A stretch of DNA of 64,000 nt from Bugula neritina (Eukaryota; Animalia; Bryozoa), in assembly GCA_964035545.1 (NCBI GenBank), contig OZ037767.1, forward strand, positions 16,424,581-16,488,580. The letters are read 5' to 3'. Below are positions 9,301 to 62,321 of this stretch, in pieces. The position numbers and the translations under genes are program-made. Within the stretch, counting starts at the first letter, position 1, and every line of letters starts with the position of its first letter. Under the pieces are notes generated by a model, which saw only the letters and a program-made list of their open reading frames with translations, had not been told where the DNA came from and did no database searches.

Positions 9301-12300
9301 CTCTCTTGTCAAAATTGCTTTTGGCCAACTTTCAACTATGCAAACTCTTTGGAAGTATAATAGACTTTTTCTATCTATTAGTGTCAACTAAGTCTTCACT
9401 TTTTGTATGCCGCAGCTTCTAACATATAATGAGTTGTTTAGCTTCACATTACAATTTCTAAGTGTTGATTGAAAATTTGAGTTACATGAACTCTTATGTT
9501 TTGAAATGTATGCAAGGTGACTCATACTGATATGCTGATACATACTAACATGCTGACTCATACTAACATGCTGACTCATACTGACATGTTGACTCATACT
9601 GACATGTTGACTTATACTGACATGTTGACTTATACTGGCATGTTGACACATACTAATACATACTGATATGTTGATACATACTAACATGCTGACTCATACT
9701 GGCATGTTGACACATACTGATATGTTGACTCATACTGACACATACTGATATGTTGACTCATGCTGACACATACTGACACATACTGATACATGCTGACTAT
9801 AAATTGCTGGTTGACTCACTTAGAATGTTGCGAGGCTGGAAGTCAGCACACGAGGTGATCAAAGAGTCAGCTCAGCTCCTGCTGTCTGACTCGTCAGCCG
9901 TGCAACAGGAAGTGTTTGATGTTGATTGGCTGAAGGATGTAGAAGACGTGTTGGAGACTCGCAGACTCATCAGCTTGTCTCCCGGGCAGAGGTTAGTGTG
10001 GCTAGTTTAGACCTTTACCATATGACTTAGTTCAGTTCTATTGAATAAATGGCTAAGCCCGTGTTCTATACTTCAGGAAAGAGCTGGTCATCTACAACTC
10101 CTCCCCTCACCAGAGACAGGAAGTGGTGAGAGTCTGGGTCTCTCGGGTGCCGATATCCGTGTACGACGTTACGCTGCAGGCGGTGGAGTGCCAAGTCTCT
10201 CCTTACTTTGAGGCAGAGACTGTCGTATCTAACAACAAGTTCAAGGTCTGTCAGTCGCACTGTCAGTGGCACTGTGAGTCAGTCGTGTGTGTGGAGCATG
10301 TAGGTGTGTGTTTGAGTCAGTCAGTCTGAAGGAGGCTGTCAAAGTAGCCAAGTTCAATGTATGTCATATTTTAGTTCATTTAGAAGCTGTCTTAGTTCTC
10401 TGGCTTGAGTTTTATAGTTGGTTGCATTTAATGTATAGGCTTTTAGTTGGTCTACTTCTTGTATTAAGTGTTAAGCTTACTCATTTTGAGTTGCTGAAAA
10501 TTGAACCCTTCAACCTAATAACTCGTTAAACGTGGCTAACTTGGCCAATATTAGTATGTGCAAATTTTTTAAAGCACTCCACTATTATAATAATAATTTG
10601 ACTTTCATATTTTCTTATGCCAATAATATTGATAGTTATATAAACAATATATATGAAGACAACTTTTCTATGCTCCCACCTTGTCTCAATGAGTCTGATA
10701 GACAATTACTGCTTGTAATACTAGTCCTATGTCTTTCAGTTGAGTTTCCTAGCTAAAGTTCCTGCTCTGGGTATGGTAACATACTCACTGGAGGCCTCAG
10801 AAACCAACCCGTGTACTATTGCTACTGTCACGTACTATAACCATAGAGATAGTGTGGCCGAAGAGTAAGTCCTGGAATGAATAGTTCTATTGCTCATAAT
10901 ATATCTACCAACTTTTATTTCACTTAGTTTGTCATATTGCAACTAAATTTTCTAGTTTTCCCCAGTTAACTAGGAGTTGTGCTTCTTTTCCGAAACTTAA
11001 TATATTGTAGTTTTAAATGAGAGAAGCTAATCTCTGTCTGAATCTGAATTAAAGACTGTGTAACTGATAATCAACTATAAACTTCTTAATTGATTGGCAT
11101 TCTGCCAAGTTAAATTAACCGATCGAAGTGACTAACAGATTGTACCAGTGTTAGCTGGAGTTACCTACAATGTTCGCTGGAATTATTGTAGTGGAGTGTT
11201 CAACCCCACACTGGACACAGGAGACAAGCTGACTATACACAATGATCAGCTTGAAGTGGAGTTATCCACCTCTTCTGGGATGTTACTTGTGAGTTACTTG
11301 TATATAATATACTATTATGTGTGTCTGTATATGTGTATATACTAGTATGTGTGTCTGTATGTATATACAGATATAAATCACGTGTTATTCTTAATGTTAC
11401 AGTCCATGACTGACAGGAAGTCTAATGAACAACATCCTCTAGAGATGAGTTTTATAAAATACAAATCATCAAAAGCGAGAGATCATGCCGGCGGTGCCTA
11501 TCTGTTTATTCCCACTGGAAGCTCACAGGTGTGTACGCTGCTCAGCGCTGCTGCTAATGCTGACTTATGAAAGCTTTCTTGGTTTTCTCTCTCTCTTTAT
11601 TAGAGGAAGTTGTCTGCCTATCTTTAGTAGACTGTTGATCCTCGTGTCAACTTTAGTGCTAGTCATTTCTGTAATTGGGAACATTATTTCATCTGGGAAC
11701 ATATCCGTTGTCAGGATGTGCTGCACCAGTTATTGCTGAGTTGAGAGGGAATATTGCTCATCAATAGATTTCAGTGACTGAGGAATATAGTAAGAGTTAC
11801 CAGCTCATCTCTGGTCTGTCTATTATTTTTGCAGTCAGTTCTCCAGAGTCGCCCTCTCATGAGAATTATAAAGGGGAATCTGTTCCATGAAGTGCACACT
11901 ATGACCTCTCTAGTCGAACACACTGTTAGACTAGTCAACACTCCAGGTGAGAGCTCATTGTCTACTCTGTAACAGTATAACTGTGTTACTTTGCAGCGAT
12001 AACTCTATCAGCATAAACGTCTGTGTTACACTTCAGTGTCAGTGCTATCAGTATACCTGTGTTACTCTGCAGTGTCAATGCTATCAGTATACATGTGTTG
12101 CTCTACAGTGAAAACTCTATTAGTATAAACATCTGCGTTACTCTGCAGTGATAACTCTATCAATACACCTGTTTGTGTTACTCTGCAGTGTCAATGCTAT
12201 ATAATGTACACACTGTCATACACAGGTCCCGAAAGTCTTGGACTGGAGGTAGTAAACATAGACACCATCACGTCTCTGGACGACACGGACTTCGGTATGC

Positions 12301-42601: not shown

Positions 42602-42674
<73 letters not shown>

Positions 42675-42680
<6 letters not shown>

Positions 42681-42869
42681 GAAATAAAATGAGATTTGAT
42701 TAATATAATGGCATTTATTACTAGTAGTTTCGTACACAAGAACGATGTGCACTCGTCAGATAAATTAGCCATTATATTAATCAAATCTCATTTTATTTCT
42801 TCTAATGTTTACGCTCTAGATTTATTTCTATAGAGCACTCTAGTAACGTTTTATAAACACTCATTTTAC
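42675..42869. mobile_element. Non-autonomous fold-back mini-derivative of the adjacent Penelope-like element, in (TA)n
   Basis: It has the same left end (ttagaagaaat..) and right end (..cattttac) as the 42960-45129 element, with everything between the two stem-I arms missing. Confidence 0.88.
42705..42775 (-). ncRNA. Type I hammerhead ribozyme (copy 1)
   Basis: Minus strand reads CUGACGA-gugcaca/uguguac (stem II)-GAAAC-uacua-GUA, closed by stem I. Confidence 0.85.
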
Positions 42870-42879
42870 TATATATATA

Positions 42880-42965
<86 letters not shown>

Positions 42966-42989
42966 GAAATAAAATGAGATTTGATTAAT

Positions 42990-43060
42990 ATAATGGCATT
43001 TATTACTAGTAGTTTCGTACACAAAAACGATGTGCACTCGTCAGATAAATTTGCCACTAT
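42990..43060 (-). ncRNA. Type I hammerhead ribozyme (copy 2, 3' pLTR)
   Basis: Same core as copy 1. Stem I arms are auaguggcaaauuuau / auaaaugccauuau. Confidence 0.88.
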
Positions 43061-43158
43061 GATTGCTTACAACTATAAAATATTGTAATATGTAAATATA
43101 CGCGGAATAAAGCTAGAAGATCAAAATATAACAAAGAGGTAGCATTGGAAGTAATTGG

Positions 43159-44809
43159 CTATGTCACAGCATTCTTGAGTAGAAATTTACTACTATGTCT
43201 GCATATAGATAAAAAGTCATTGCGCTTATTGAGAGAAGACAACTGTGGCTTATAAAGAATGAAATATTTTTCCCATAAGCACAGCTGACAGTTTTTAGTG
43301 ATGTTATTGTATGGTTGAGCTTTTCTGAGGATTTTCCAGGATATGGTAAAATCTAGACCTTTGTCTTTTAAGGACCAGATGTGTTTGCTTAACTCAGTTT
43401 GCAAGCGCTTGGTTGGGTGCCTGAAGGAAGCAAGGTGGTTGTAGTATCTTGCCTTGAATGCAGTGGAGGAAATTCCTACATATGTTTCGACAGTATCGTT
43501 TGATGGGACGGATACTTTGGCCTGGTACACAATGTTTGGGATGGTGCATTCTTCTGGAAGAGGGCATGTCTCTACATTTCTACAGTTACAGCTTGCCTGT
43601 GATATAGGGGCAGTGTTGCATTTAGTGACACTTTTGTTGTGGGCAGTGATAGTCTGCTCTAAATTCGGGCAGCAACTGTAGCTGAGTTTGAGTGTGTTTT
43701 TATTAAATATTTTGTGCAGTGGGTGTAATTTGGTGTGGAATATATCTTTTATCAGCTTGAGGAATATGGAGCCGATTTTCGTCTTTACATTACGGCTATA
43801 AGGTGGGTTGTAGCAGATGACTCGTCTTTGTCGTATGGGTTTGATGCTTGTGTTGGTGTTGTTGGTGTAGTCTTTGTATTTGAGTTGGTAATTATATCCA
43901 CTTTTAGCCAATGCATCTTGATATTGTGGAATGGCATTGTTGAAAATAGTTTCATTAGTAGATATATCACAAAGTCTGCGGTTTATGGATTCTGGTATGT
44001 TTTCCAGTATGCTAGGGGGATGGTTAGACTCTTTGTGTACATACAGAGGAATGTTGTTAGGCTTAGAGTATGGTGTATGATGTTTCTTGACCAGATCTAG
44101 GGTGACATCTAAATAGTCAGTTGTCTTAATGTTAACATCTATGGTGTTCTTTAGACCGTGTGACTGGAATAATATGCAGAGATCTTTTTTCAGTCTTTCA
44201 GCTAGTTGTGGTTTAAGATCTGTTACTCCTAACCCATCATCTCGATATAGTCCAATATTAGCTTTAAACTTTTTTGAGATTGTACTTAATAAAAATAATC
44301 CTACTAATTCACATGTTTCAGCACCATCGTGTGAGCCCATAGTGACGTCAAACAAATTATCTGATTGTCTTTTACCCCAAAATGAGTTGTCATGCACCAA
44401 TATAGATTTTTTTGTGTGCAATATGATATTCCGTTCGTGGTTGCTGACTGTAGTATGCAAGTTGGCAAAGTCGAGAGCATCTGATAGTAGCTTTGGCGAT
44501 ATAGATGGATAAAATTCCACGATATCAAACACGATAAAAGAGTGCCTGTTTGTGGTGGTTAAATTGTTAAACCAATGTAAAACTGCAGATGTGCTTTTCC
44601 ACTGATTTAGGCCAAGTTTGCTGTTTATCGTTGAATTAATTCTGTCAAGTAGTTGTTTACTCACCCTACCTATCTCTGGTTTGGTGGGGTTAATAAGGCG
44701 ACAGGTGGGGTTAGTTATGTAGTTAGCCTTATGGTCCTTGATAGTAATGAAGGCGGGTTTCTTAGCTGTTATAGTAATTCTGTCTTCAAGTTCCAATTGT
44801 TCAGCCATG
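43159..44809 (-). CDS. PLE reverse transcriptase + GIY-YIG endonuclease (N-terminally truncated, otherwise open)
   Basis: CRLINPTK, FDIVEFYPSI, FDVTMGSHDGAETCELVG, LYRDDGL, DYLDVTLDL, YVHKESNHPP, linker CNCx5CPLx3C, IVYQA..YVG..FKARYYNH, CQLCLWEK..LNKR..CRH. The first ~24 aa of the ORF-track protein come from the inverted pLTR. Confidence 0.92.
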
Positions 44810-44964
44810 ACTTTTTCTATATGCAGACATAGTAGTAAATTTCTACTCAAAAATGCTGTGACATAGCCAATTGCTTCCAATGCTACCTCTTTGTTATATT
44901 TTAATCTTCTAGCTTTATTCCGTGTATATTTACATATTACAATATTTTATAGTTGTAAGCAATC

Positions 44965-45035
44965 ATAGTGGCAAATTTATCTGACGAGTGCACATCGTTT
45001 TTGTGTACGAAACTACTAGTAATAAATGCCATTAT
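44965..45035 (+). ncRNA. Type I hammerhead ribozyme (copy 3, inverted pLTR)
   Basis: CTGACGA 44981-87, stem II 44988-94/45002-08, GAAA 45009-12, minimal stem III, and a GTA triplet with predicted cleavage after 45021. Confidence 0.88.
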
Positions 45036-45126
45036 ATTATTCAAATCTCATTTTATTTATTCTAATGTTTATGCTCTAGATTTATTTCTATAGAGCACTC
45101 TAGTAACGTTTTATAAACACTCATTT

Positions 45127-45216
<90 letters not shown>

Positions 45217-54813: not shown

Positions 54814-57406
54814 GGTTTGTGAAGTTCAGTGGAGTAGCTGTATTAATCGGCTCTGTTGATGTATAGTAGAGCCCTGGAAGTTGAAGTAGACACCGTGACT
54901 CTACTAACTGTACATTTATATAGCTAGCAGCTTCTCTCAATAACGTGTACAGCAACAATAGCATTTCTTTAGTATTGCAGCTCAACGAGGGTTTATGGAC
55001 TACTAAGAGAAACTATATAGAACATAACTCGGAGTTGTATTGTTGACTCTTTTTGCTATGGATAAATAAACTATTTTCTACTTGAACTGTTAGCAATAAC
55101 TTTAGATGTTTTAAGGTTACAAATAATGTTGACCCAGGGGCAGGTGACACCTGCCCCGTGGACACTGTGATCAATCAGATTGAATACTAGGCTATATACT
55201 TGACATCCACTGTATGCCCATTCACCTGGTTAAGTGGAGTTACTCTACATTACATAATAAATATAACATAAGTATAATAAAATAACATTATAGTTCTCAA
55301 TACCAGCTACCTTACCTGAACTTCTAAATCCGTATGACATGTAACTATCTTTGTCAAATGTTCACATGTAATCAGCTATAGATAGATGCTGATAAGATAG
55401 CTTTATTAGTGAAGATCTCATTGCATGTGAAGATATCAGTAGAGAGAGGGAGGGAAGCTTAGCTTAAGTAACTTAGATAATACTTGATAGCATATTCCTA
55501 TGACAATAATATTATACTATCTGTGATATTGTTTTGCTAGGCGTTGTGGAACTACTTAGAACAGTTATTTATATTATACTCTTATATTTATTCTCAATAT
55601 ATTAAAAGCAATGAAGCGTGACTGCTTGATTATCCATTGTTTATCAGAGGCTTTGAAGTTGTCTGTCCATTTAAAACAAGTGACTGGGGTTTCTGGGAAG
55701 ATATGTATTGAAGTCTACAGTTTGGTGTAAGCTTGTAGTTCATTGTTTAAACTCAAATCAGTGCAACTCAGCTTTCTTTTCTCCACAATATTTTCTTTGA
55801 GCTATTCACCTACATACATGTATATAGAAAAAAATCATAATGTAGCTTTTCAAAGATTATAAAAAATCATTATAAAATAAAATCATGAATTGTGTAAATT
55901 GTAAATCTATTTTATATAGAACATTGGCTTTAGGAACAAAACACCATAACAGGGCAACCATAAAAATAGCTTTGTATTAAAGTAGAGTTCACTTTTTTTG
56001 ACAAAGTTTCAGCTGAATGTGCAGTATATTATATTATATTATATATTATATTATATTATATTATATTATATTATATATATTATATTGTATTATATAAGTA
56101 CTATAGATAAAATTAATGCTTTTTTCAATGGCCACAAATTACAATAACAAAGCATTTTAAAGCAATTTTCAAAGACCACTTGAAATTTATAGATAAAAAA
56201 TAAAAATGTCAATCATATAATATGATGGCTATCCTGCATTTTCTTAATGTATGAACTGTAACAATTTGCAGGATAATAGCTTACTTCTGTATAATTATTT
56301 TCCAACTTGTGTAGATGATCTGTTATAGATGTATATGTTTAAGTAAGCAATACATTACCATTGGCTCAATATTGTCTTATATAAGGTTTTATTAATTGTT
56401 TACATATATTCTATCTTAATTGTTTATATATTTATATCTTGCTATTTCTATGCATAGTACACTATAATACCGTAGCAACATTAAATGGACACATATAGAA
56501 GTTATCTATTATGATACAGAACATACACTTTATTGCTAGAGATGATATATAGAGTTAGCATAAGAATGATATATATATTACCAAGTACGAACTTTCATAT
56601 AATAACATAATGATAACATTAAAACCTATTAATAATTATTATTAATAATAATATATGAACTTTTGTACATGAGTTTCTAGCTTAAAGATTACAGCATTTC
56701 ACTCTTTAGCTATATATACGACACACTAACAATTCCACTAATCTTACTTTTATGTCTAGTATTAAAGCTACATATAATAGGTGACTATAAGGAGAGGTCC
56801 TTCTGAAGTGATGTGGTCGCTGTGGAACTGAATATTTCCTCTCTCTTATGCCCTAGAGTCTGTCCTGATCAGATGTGACTGAAGAGAAGTAGCTTCTATA
56901 TACAATACTACTGGTTAGTATAACACATATGCATAGAATATATATATACTATAATACCTTATATACCATAATATACATATATATCTTGAATATTTCTTGT
57001 AAACTTTTTGCTGTAAACTCCAAGTATCTAATATAAAAATACTGTGCTTTGATGCCAGAAACAGAATTTGAACATCTATTAGGTCGATTCATGTTATATA
57101 AGCATGTATTTCTACAAAACAACTACAAAACTGGAAGCAGATTTAAGTATATTCAACTGCTGGAAATTATATTTCATAAGTTTATTATAATATACATAAA
57201 TAATTGCATAATAATGAATCATTTGGATGAATAACATTGCATCATTTATAAAACAACACCAATGAGATTTAAATAAATTATTTTCAAGTTGAGATGCTGA
57301 GTCTGTATTATCGGATATAATTGGGATATTACTGTAATGTAAATATAACGCAACAAGTTTCGATTTTTCGGAGTTGTTTAGCCTTGTTTAATATATTTTT
57401 AACAAC

Positions 57407-57446
57407 CATTGAACTATAATCTTCTAGTTATAGTTTCAGTTCAGTG
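57407..57446. mobile_element. 40-bp P-type end remnant with an 8-bp TSD
   Basis: ttaacaac [cattgaactataa..ttatagtttcagttcagtg] ttaacaac. Confidence 0.8.
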
Positions 57447-57476
57447 TTAACAACTTCTAAGAAATAAGGTCGAAAA

Positions 57477-57514
57477 CATTGAACTATAACCCATATTATA
57501 GCTTCAGTTCAGTG
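57477..57514. mobile_element. 38-bp P-type end remnant with an 8-bp TSD
   Basis: gtcgaaaa [cattgaactataa..ttatagcttcagttcagtg] gtcgaaaa. Confidence 0.8.
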
Positions 57515-57759
57515 GTCGAAAACATCGAACTCAATAATATCTGGAATGGGTACGGGTGTACTTTGTAATGTAACCTCGTTGCCGATTGGCTTTGTGAGCC
57601 CGAGCATGCTCATTTTCTAGCGGGAGAAAATAGAGCCGGTCGTCCATCATTTCGATTGAGTGAATCTCACTTTTAAACTTTGTTTTTTGTCCTGCTTTAT
57701 ATCTGAAGCGACTATATTTTTATTTAATTGTGTTTTCTATCATCTCTACTTCGTTAAAC

Positions 57760-58474
57760 ATGTCGAATTCTCCGTATCCTGAGCAAACTAAGGGTCAAAG
57801 AAGCAAGACCACTGGGTCTCAGTGTTATGCATACAATTGCCGCAACTACCAGTACAGCAGTTACATAAAGACAAAGAAAATCTCTTTTCACAAGTAAGTA
57901 TATGGCTTTAGTTACAAAATCAGTGAAAGTAATACATGAACTAGCGTAACAGTAGGCTTAATAGTTGTGGTAGCGGTGCTGCTGCTTACTAGTGGTACTA
58001 GTACTAGTAGTACTCTACTACTACTAGTAGTAGTAGTAATACTAATACTAATAGCTAAGGCTAATGGCTAATGTTATACTTACAGTATCAGTATGATATT
58101 ACTACTACTACTACTACTGCTGCTACTACTACTACTAGCCTACTGCTACTACTACTACTATTACTACTAGCCTACTGCTACTACTAGTACTACTACTACT
58201 ACTACTAGCCTACTGCTACTACTAGTACTACTACTACTAGTACTAGCCTACTGCTACTACTACTACTAGCCTACTGCTACTACTACTACTAGCCTACTGC
58301 TGCTACTACTACTAGCCTACTGCTACTACTACTACTAGCCTACTGCTACTACTACTACTAGCCTACTGCTACTACTACTACTAGCCTACTGCTACTAGTA
58401 CTACTACTACTAGCCTACTGCTACTACTACTACTAGCCTACTGCTACTACTAGCCTACTGCTACTACTACTAGC

Positions 58475-58517
<43 letters not shown>

Positions 58518-58555
58518 GAGCCTACTACTACTACTAGCCTACTGCTACTACTAGC

Positions 58556-58594
<39 letters not shown>

Positions 58595-59960
58595 GCCTAC
58601 TACTACTACTACTAGCCTACTGCTACTACTAGCCTACTGCTACTACTACTAGCCTACTACTACTACTAGCCTACTACTACTACTACTACTAGTAGAGCGC
58701 TACTTTGGCAATGCAGTTATAATTGAGTGTTGAACTAATATCTTTATTGTGTCATCTACTCAGGTGTCTCTTGCTACCCAGTTGCTGTCAGCTTCAGTGG
58801 CTGACTCACTTGATACGCTGAAACAGTTGGGACTCTCTAAATTCCAGCAGTGTGATGCTACCATCAACTTCATTAGGGTTTGTTACAGCTTTTAGTTTTA
58901 TTTCTTTAAAATACTGTAACTGCAATCGTCCCATGTTCTGCTGATGTTACTTTTTCTGTAGCGAGTAGATCGGTTGTTTGACATCCTGAATAGTTGATCA
59001 GCAATAGCTAAAGGCTACAAGCAGCCTTTACATCTAAATGGTATCAGTGTCATCATTCCTTTTCTGAAAGATACACGGCAATATTTGCTAGGCCTAAAGA
59101 ATAATGAAGGGATACCTCTGTACAAGACCAAAAGGTAAATTTCCTATTAACATAGAAAGTGTTACTTGTCTATATTTCAGATCTAATATGTGCTTGTCCC
59201 TATTTGTGTTATTTACAGACATGTTTGTATTACTGGACTTGTATGTGACACAGTATTTGGGTTGGTGGAGAAACTGTTGGTGCCTAAAACGCTGGACTAT
59301 CTGCTAATGTATAAATTTTCGCAAGACCATTTAGAGCTGTGGTATGCTACAGCTCTGAACAGCTATGCATGAAGCCCAGTCTGCATGCACTTATGTTAAC
59401 ATGTTTATTTGTTCTCTTACTCTCTTATCTCTTTCCTTCAGGTGTTCGGTTTTTCACTTTGCTTTGATAGGTGCAACTAAGATGGTCGGTTGAACCAACT
59501 GTGTTGAAAAGTGAATTTTTTTACATGAGCTTAGCGGTTAAAATGCATGCAATATGAAGTATATTTTATTAACTTTTGAATACGAAGAGACAAAGATGAT
59601 GAATTTTCAAAAATTTCCAAAACTGTGGTGTCAAAGCAATTGTGCATTTTTTAATTAAATGACTTTTTTGGCTTAATTGCATGCAAGGTTTTGCTTGTGT
59701 TCTAAAAAAAAAAAATCATTTTTCTGGGTAAACATAATCCAATCATTAATTGTGAACAGGCAATTGATGTCCAAGCATTTTTTTAATATCTGTTTTAGGT
59801 GGATGGAATAATAACGCATCTGTAACTGGCTTTCAGTCTATCTTTAGAAAATTGGTGACCCGATGTGGTGTACATCCAGGCAACTCAGGAAATTCTAAGC
59901 CATTAGATAGCACAACTGCTATTCATGGAGACATCATTAGGCATCGAAAATCATCATTTC
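57760..59960 (+). pseudogene. Spliced P-element/THAP9-like transposase pseudogene
   Basis: Exon 1 has a THAP start, CYAYNCRN..ISFH, then gtaagt. Later exons read VSLATQLLSASVADSL..ATINFIR, VDRLFDILNS*..KGYKQPL, YLLMYKFSQDHLELW and GGWNNN..FQSIFRKL. The rest of THAP and the N-terminal catalytic exons are absent, and there is an in-frame TGA. Confidence 0.88.
57995..58695. repeat. (CTA)n-based compound microsatellite within transposon intron 1
   Basis: Repeated ctactactactagcctactg. Confidence 0.95.
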
Positions 59961-60839
59961 TCCCTTTTAAATTTACTCATTGAAGTATATTATGACTTAT
60001 TTCAGCACCACATTGCTAAACTAACAAATATTGCTATTCACAAACTAAATTTCAGGCAATGTAGCAACAAAAGTGTACTGTTTAGAGGCCAGTAATAAGG
60101 ATGTGGGTAATTAATCGTTTAGAAGTTATTACAACAGTATTTATATTATAACATTAGATGATAACAAATATTGTTATTGCAATATAATATTATTTTTTGT
60201 TTATTCTGTAATTCTATTTTAATCACTTATTGCTTTCAGATTAGCACTTGAAAACAGAATTTAAAACTTTGAAAAGTTTAAGGAAATCTGTTACTTGCCT
60301 GTGTTGTAAAGCTGTGTCTTACCACCGGTTTTTTTTATATTATTTATAAACTTTTATACTTGTTATCCTTACTGTCAGTGTTCATGTACTAAGGCTGAAA
60401 TTTGCTTTGCTGTTGCTTTTCATTTCATGTTGACTAATGTGTTGATCTAATCAATAAATATGTAATGCATTTGTTAGGTTATTAAAGTTATTATCATATA
60501 TACTTGAGGTACATGCTTCATAAAATGATAATTAGTCATGAAATTACAAATACCAAAAGTAAAATAAACAAAATAATTGGTTCCTGCTTCACATTGCTGA
60601 ATTTTCTTTATTTTTTAGTGTTTACCTCAATTTATAAGCTCTAATAGCTTGCATTTATAATGGATTTTACTACTACTGCTGTGTGCAAAACAAGTAGGCG
60701 TGGTTAAGTTTTCCATGTTAAGGCGGAGCTAAACTATTTGGCCAAGCTAAAACGTCCTTGGCCTCTCCAGGTCTATTCCAGCTCAGTGGTCGAAAACCTC
60801 TGCACCACAAGGATCTAAGGCTTAAAGTAGCCTAGGACC

Positions 60840-60877
60840 CACTGAGCTGGAATAGTTAATAATTATTGAGTTCATTG
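60840..60877 (-). mobile_element. 38-bp remnant made of both ends of the adjacent P-like element, reverse orientation
   Basis: ctaggacc [cactgagctggaatag..attattgagttcattg] ctaggacc. Confidence 0.85.
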
Positions 60878-60884
60878 CTAGGAC

Positions 60885-60910
60885 CACTAAACTATAGTTT
60901 CAGTTCAGTG
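60885..60910. mobile_element. 26-bp P-type end remnant
   Basis: cactaaactatagtttcagttcagtg, with TSD cctaggac at 60831-38 and 60911-18. The left copy is displaced by the 60840 insertion. Confidence 0.75.
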
Positions 60911-62321
60911 CCTAGGACTCTCACGCTGGCTGCAACTAATTGTGATGGATAAATCATAATGATTATAATTATTGTTATGCAGTATAATAATATATTCACT
61001 TATATTAATATTGAAACTTTTAGTACGAATATTTTTATTTACTGCAGCATTTATCATAATCAATCTAAATTTTAATGAAGAAGTTTGACTATTTGTTCCA
61101 CTTCCAAGCATTACAATTACATTTAGTGATTTACTTTTAGTTTTACTTTTAGTTTTACTTTTACTTTTAGTTTTACTTTTAGTTTTACTTTTAGTTTTAC
61201 TTTAACTTTTAGTTTTAGTTTTACTTTTAGTCAATTAATGATTTACTAAATCTAATAGTAATAGTAATACTAACAGTAATACTAGTAAGTAACACTAATG
61301 GACAATAGTGAAGTGATAGTAATACTCATACTGTAATAGTAATACTCATACTGTCATCGTAATACTAATACTAGTAGTAATACTAATACTAATAGTAATA
61401 CTATTAGTATTACTACTAGTATTACCCGTATTAGTTTTACTATTATTATTTGCGTTAGAGAATTATTTTGATTATTTCAGTACTAATAGTAATACTAATA
61501 GTAATACTAATAGTAATACTAAAAGTAATAGAATACTAATACTAGTAATACTGCTGTTAGTGTTAATAGTGCTACTACTAGTCATAATCACATTCACTGT
61601 AAGTGTAATGCATCATAATAATATTAATATTAATTAATAATGATGTTCACCAATAGAAATTTTCAGTCAGTTGCATTGTTGTGTGTGCTTGTTGCATTTT
61701 TATTACACACTGAGCAATAATTCATAATCACTGTCAGTGTTGTGGTTACTTACTATAAAAGAAAGATTCTGTACCAGTGCATGGTACTTAGGAGTTACTA
61801 AAGGTGCTGGTTCTTATACTAGCCTTTAGCAGTTGACTCAGACTCAGAATGAATTAAGGCAGATTATATGTTTTTTGCTTATTCTAGTCTTTTGTGCCTT
61901 GGGTTTTCACTGCAACTAGCTGTGCCACAGATACATACACACCAACTTTAGTCTGTGGGACAGAGTTTAAGTGACACTACAGCTTTGAGGGTTTGGTTCT
62001 ACTCATTGCTAATATTGGCTACTTTTACATTTAGTTTTGATGCATACATTATTTGGACCTGTAAAATATCAATATAGCTGTTTACTACCATTTACATTAT
62101 TTAGTTTAAATTTGAGATAAAATTAATTTGTTGCAAATTTTAATCTTTTCACTAAAATTTTGTATGCTCTATATCACATTTAAACACTATATTATTGATT
62201 TGCTATTTTACAGTCTGTCTTACTAATGACAAAAATAAAGTAGTTTGAAAGATTGCATCAAAACTGATCAATTTTTGCATAGTTTTTGCAAATATTCATG
62301 TTTTCCAGCTGAAGTATAGAA

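Follow-up and report, generated by a model that had tools for sequence, protein, structure and literature searches.

A window of 64,000 nucleotides from the bryozoan Bugula neritina (contig OZ037767.1, positions 16,424,581 to 16,488,580) contains a 3266-bp P-like transposable element and, beside it, four inserts of 26–40 bp. Inspection of the letters showed that all four inserts start with CA, finish with TG and sit where a first-pass annotation had placed them. That annotation described each insert as bracketed by an 8-bp target-site duplication (TSD). The bracket is perfect around 57407-446, 57477-514 and 60840-877, and it becomes visible around 60885-910 only once the nested insert 60840-877 is subtracted, the target of the nested insert being shifted by 1 nt so that it takes in the older scar's initial C. 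Of the four inserts, 60840-877 belongs to the family of the 3.27-kb element (family B, subfamily B2), and the other three belong to a second family, A. The reading of 60840-877 as 16 nt of each end around a 6-nt filler had to be abandoned, because the filler is element sequence: B2 is matched over 24 nt and the 3' end over 16 nt, with a 2-nt overlap. When the window was Markov-shuffled, each shuffled version had 0–2 generic TSD-flanked CA..TG inserts. Another 32-bp CA..TG insert between 8-bp duplications lies at 12146-12177; it is without family A or B ends, and is either chance or some other family. The features are collected in Table 1. Because the 3266-bp element and the adjoining scar share their duplication, the same 8-mer was used twice.

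Table 1. Features of the window, with insert lengths and TSDs
Feature	Position	Strand	Description
Family A scar with TSD	57399..57454	+	Insert 57407-446, 40 bp: about 14 nt of CATTG end, short filler, 20 nt of CACTG end; perfect TSD TTAACAAC
Family A scar with TSD	57469..57522	+	Insert 57477-514, 38 bp: 16 nt of CATTG end, filler, 19 nt of CACTG end (1 substitution); perfect TSD GTCGAAAA
Family B1 P-like element	57523..60788	+	3266 bp, internally deleted, broken; motif TGGA after nt 19 at both ends; TSD GTCGAAAA in common with the adjacent scar, third copy at 60789-796
First coding exon	57760..57893	+	THAP-like Cys spacing judged by eye; no Pfam hit when searched alone
(TAC)n microsatellite tract	57987..58695	.	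About 700 bp; occupies the place of the middle of the transposase gene, deleted here
Transposase exon pieces	58764..59920	+	PF21788 (E 2e-11) and a split, weak PF21789; stop at 58995-997 in the window copy
Family B2 scar	60832..60885	-	Insert 60840-877, 38 bp: 23-24 nt of B2 5' end and 15-16 nt of 3' end, 1-2 nt microhomology, filler-free; perfect TSD CTAGGACC
Family A scar with TSD	60885..60918	+	Insert 60885-910, 26 bp: 12 + 18 nt via 4-nt TATA microhomology; TSD CCTAGGAC, visible after subtracting 60840-877
573-codon open reading frame	43159..44880	-	Reverse-transcriptase (YRDD) and GIY-YIG-like motifs, long inverted repeats either side (flanks about 42603-45214), no reported Pfam hit; looks like a Penelope-like retroelement

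The transposase was searched one exon at a time, without a joined spliced model. In the Pfam search, PF21788 is the GTP-binding insertion domain and PF21789 the C-terminal piece of the RNase H domain. Relatives carry PF21787, PF21788, PF21789 and PF22824 (TNP-like RNase H and THAP9_C domains), one of them with THAP PF05485; sequence searches of the PDB returned nothing useful. The GTP-binding insertion domain in the RNase H fold, the 8-bp TSD and the CA..TG termini were all found, and by these sequence features the element is assigned to the P superfamily (THAP9-like). One transposase exon has 33 copies in the genome, about 20 of them identical and located in shorter elements, and another set that is 95% identical and located in 4704-bp elements. 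In the tested exon the deleted B1 and B2 copies are 100% identical to each other and 95% identical to the 4.7-kb copies, and the corresponding exon of family A is about 63% identical (single match). An open frame of 282 residues is found in elements 4704-4707 bp long, located at G000:C1:24910557-24915260 and at five or more other sites. These elements are candidate young autonomous copies, and the 4704-bp elements are likely the autonomous partners of the deleted ones. B2 copies are 2.1 to 3.8 kb long, a variation perhaps partly due to the (TAC)n tract. Related sequence is also present in symbiont metagenomes.

Scars and donors across the genome

The whole genome (216.0 Mb, 321 pieces) was searched for the same ends. 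The family A end 18-mer had 242 matches, of which 223 have the other end within 30 nt, family B gave 118 short two-ended inserts, and a further family-specific end search gave 85 matches; the control was 0 for each of these figures. A generic end pattern was found at 818 loci against 48 in the control, which corresponds to about 770 scars genome-wide, belonging to several coexisting P-like families. In stored loci, 48 of the 57 scars are flanked by a TSD that has one mismatch or none (consensus GT....AC), 47 of these 48 TSDs being distinct. The scars range from 23 to more than 60 bp and their interiors are mostly unique. One B2 scar is embedded in a different multicopy repeat, with which it has been duplicated (six hits, L057, L059 and L068); it was counted once. 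Further scars adjoin known ones at L054:1459-1492 and at L023:1386 (minus strand), among them a rare third family of few copies, seen in L054, that has the TSD in common with its neighbour.

The first-pass annotation had interpreted the inserts as excision footprints, for which it expected variable fillers, and had made this depend on the existence of full-length elements with the same termini. Such donors exist for both families (about 9 copies of 2.2 kb for A, 12 ends for B1, and 13 or more for B2), where the long elements are known from their end coordinates and one exon search. Together with the distinct TSDs and the variable junctions, this supports the interpretation, and the four inserts are very probably real P-type excision footprints.

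Two abutting ends were found at 26 loci, 20 of which have a gap of 7 or 8 nt, compared with 5 control hits and about 0.01 expected at random. The gap is 7 nt in 11 of the 26 pairs: the 8-bp target of the newer insertion takes the terminal base of the older insert, as at 60832-60885. At G000:C1:617777-624253, two B2 elements stand tail to tail, 7 nt apart, making a 6.5-kb inverted repeat. The cluster in the window probably grew by insertions that returned to one preferred 8-mer. Among the assembled contigs of other samples, one spans 60849-61098 with 7 differences, and therefore most of the right-hand scar pair is shared with another sample; another contig ceases to match the window at 57402, where the first duplication lies. 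The annotation had called the scars fixed, which is unproven, as only the right-hand pair was seen in one other sample.

Inner motif and retention ceilings

All long ends share an inner motif, a C followed by TGGA..GG, and its distance from the terminus differs among them. It comes after nt 19 at both B1 ends and the B 3' end in general, after nt 23 at the B2 5' end, and after nt 22 at the rarer B3 5' end. In family A it comes after nt 22 at the 5' end, which is homologous to the B 5' end, and after about nt 18 (17–19) at the 3' end. How much of each end the scars retain was tallied by hand from listings. At the B 3' end, 24 scars keep at least 18 nt; 7 of them stop at 18, 11 at 19, 3 at 20, none at 21–22, and 3 at 23, with G at nt 19 in 17 of the 24 (P about 1e-9). 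At the A 5' end, 33 scars keep at least 21 nt; 20 of these extend to nt 22 and 14 of the 20 to nt 23, with 2 at 24 or beyond. At the B2 5' end, 9 of the 20 hits keeping at least 21 nt reach 23–24 and none reaches 25, and all four B3 5' ends stop at C22 or a shared T. Read-through past the motif gave 0 hits from CATTG/CAATG-type ends and 4 hits, which represent three events, from CACTG-type ends. The stagger of 16–17 nt given by the annotation was not borne out by these tallies, since 19, 22 or 23 nt of particular ends are retained far above chance, beyond the 17-nt limit of the fly. Its proposal of the same unusual cleavage chemistry survives as a long staggered cut of THAP9/P-like elements, while the length does not equal the 17 nt of the fly. 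From the sequences of the scars, we consider it probable that the stagger is longer than in the fly, unequal between the ends, and that the motif, rather than a ruler from the terminus, determines where the inner nick falls.

Several observations weigh against this conclusion. The A 3' end cannot discriminate against 17 nt owing to a slippery C-run (17–19). One additional A matches in 14 of the 20 A 5' scars, and in 7 B2 scars a T is common to both ends, which leaves an uncertainty of 1 nt in the register. Three of the 19-nt B scars are explicable as GG-to-GG joins via the 5' motif. Moreover, the ceilings are maxima of repair products, from which a nick position can only be deduced; the transposase is known here from exon pieces; and the assembled contigs contained no empty allele.

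Among the 61 scars whose head is of the B2 type, 24 contain the B2 spacer, compared with 0 of the 39 that have the other head (P about 1e-6). This confinement indicates that the spacer is inherited and not made anew in repair. Hairpin (hAT/RAG-type) P-nucleotides were considered for its palindromic start and rejected, as the spacer is full-length B2 sequence. Similarly, snap-back on the C-run of the other end was rejected as the origin of the Gs at A ends, because only 1 of 20 has four Gs. The longer 5' spacers of B2 and B3 resemble repair inserts, suggesting that new subfamilies originate in a cut at one end followed by end joining, and that they remain mobile.

Proposed excision route and alternatives

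In the proposed mechanism, the transposase would cut the transferred strand at the terminus and nick the other strand inside the element, leaving both donor ends with long 3' tails of element sequence. The inner nick would be placed relative to the conserved motif at C|TGGA..GG, possibly 1 nt later, and the tail length would track the spacer: 19 nt (B1 5', B 3'), 22 nt (B3 5', A 5'), 23 nt (B2 5') and about 18 nt (A 3'). The enzyme, including the one presumed to move B2 and A, would anchor on the inner motif for this nick and tolerate a variable spacer. Cleavage of the fly P element takes place at the terminus on the transferred strand and 17 nt further in on the other strand, with order and mechanism unknown (PMC7776569). 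Fly excision junctions stop at 17 nt (PMC2895639, Tables 1–3) and the P end continues with AGG beyond nt 17 (PMC9682801), which places the fly nick one base before GG, like the ceilings observed here. In the fly structure, the helix-turn-helix binds the repeat in its inner half, and the transferred strand lacks order at nt -14 to -18 (PMC7776569), an arrangement that would tolerate a variable spacer. We lean towards a general form of this idea, in which P-superfamily transposases nick from an inner anchor one base before GG and engage the terminus separately. One enzyme would then give unequal tails, the 17 nt of the fly would be one spacer value, and scar archives in genomes could map P-like cleavage positions without biochemistry.

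The tails would be rejoined by microhomology-mediated end joining in the style of polymerase theta, with templated AT-rich inserts. The scar inserts are AT-rich and partly copy the element ends; at fly excision sites, templated AT-rich inserts occur and repair is by polymerase theta (PMC2895639). The 26-mer of 60885-910, 12 + 18 nt sharing TATA, recurs at unrelated sites, as do a 30-mer, a 34-mer and, seven times, a 38-mer. The commonest 30-mer consists of 18 + 16 nt sharing ATAT with the end of the 4.7-kb subfamily. The recurrent 29-, 32-, 33-, 34- and 38-mers are the products predicted if a terminal C or TC of one tail pairs with G or GA in the other.

The main rival is a fixed stagger of about 17 nt as in the fly, the extra bases being copied from the sister before the ends are joined, in a short synthesis that comes to a halt at the motif, for instance against bound transposase. 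It draws support from the majority of scars, which retain 17 nt or less, from the long one-sided retentions in L037, L039 and L065, which are products of aborted synthesis, and from the fly, in which aborted synthesis-dependent strand annealing plus end joining is common (PMC2895639). However, the synthesis must halt within 1 nt of one motif at four different distances, almost nothing is retained just past the motif, and the lengths that recur agree with a primer whose 3' end is C or TC. We regard this explanation as unlikely. It is still less probable that the transposases are particular to their family or subfamily, each with a fixed ruler length of its own, the match to the motif being co-evolved and not mechanistic. 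The coexistence of several P-like families and the divergent family A exon agree with separate rulers, but the two ends of one and the same element differ (B2 23/19; A 22/about 18), and the tested exon does not separate the deleted B1 and B2 copies from each other. The recurrent interiors at unrelated sites would suit a mobile family of miniature inverted-repeat elements of 26–40 bp, for which the annotation had expected many copies with an identical filler. Each recurrent form checked is a microhomology join of two ends, the sizes and mostly unique interiors lack the homogeneity of such a family, and the inserts are without the inner motif that all long ends share, so this very improbable explanation is already largely refuted. 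Extreme internal deletion without excision, by replication slippage or ectopic deletion between ends, could produce the many junctions with microhomology but neither the sharp two-sided ceiling at the motif nor the fly-like templated AT-rich inserts (PMC2895639), and is hardly credible.

The natural subfamilies with 19-, 22- and 23-nt spacers are a ready-made test of motif versus ruler, and the six or more 4.7-kb copies of identical length with the 282-residue open frame are a candidate source of an active non-fly enzyme. The approximately 770 scars are also an in vivo record of end joining from a bryozoan germ line, in which excision adds 30–50 bp per event to the B. neritina genome.

Comparison with known systems

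A long staggered P cut and stacking at the same site are already known from flies; the difference here is a longer, end-unequal and probably motif-set stagger. The P footprints of Drosophila melanogaster (PMC2895639, PMC7776569) resemble the present scars in the 8-bp TSD on both sides, the CA..TG termini, the retention of both ends, the microhomology joins, the templated AT-rich inserts, and the nick one base before GG. They differ in that retention in the fly ends at 17 nt, in a pair of identical 31-bp repeats, whereas the ends here are unequal and imperfect, with ceilings of 19–23 nt varying by end and subfamily, and hundreds of scars persist in one assembly. Double insertion of P at one target gives tandems one TSD copy apart, because the insertion preserves the target (bioRxiv 10.1101/158386). 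The same spacing is seen in B. neritina, but the stacks combine scars with different families, and a 1-nt shift affects 11 of the 26 neighbours.

Zebrafish Pdre2/THAP9 (PMC10983969) shares the THAP9-like transposase domains, the 8-bp TSD, the CA..TG termini and the internally deleted copies. On the other hand, it has 13-bp perfect terminal inverted repeats and flank deletions in cell assays, and the available portion of that report maps no cut sites. The P element of the Drosophila repleta group and its BuT5 MITE (PMC3698922) have a very short perfect terminal match and an inner repeat at unequal distances (32 vs 30 bp), as do the elements described here. Their TSD is 8–9 bp, unlike that of B. 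neritina, and the accessible part of the source describes neither footprints nor cut positions.

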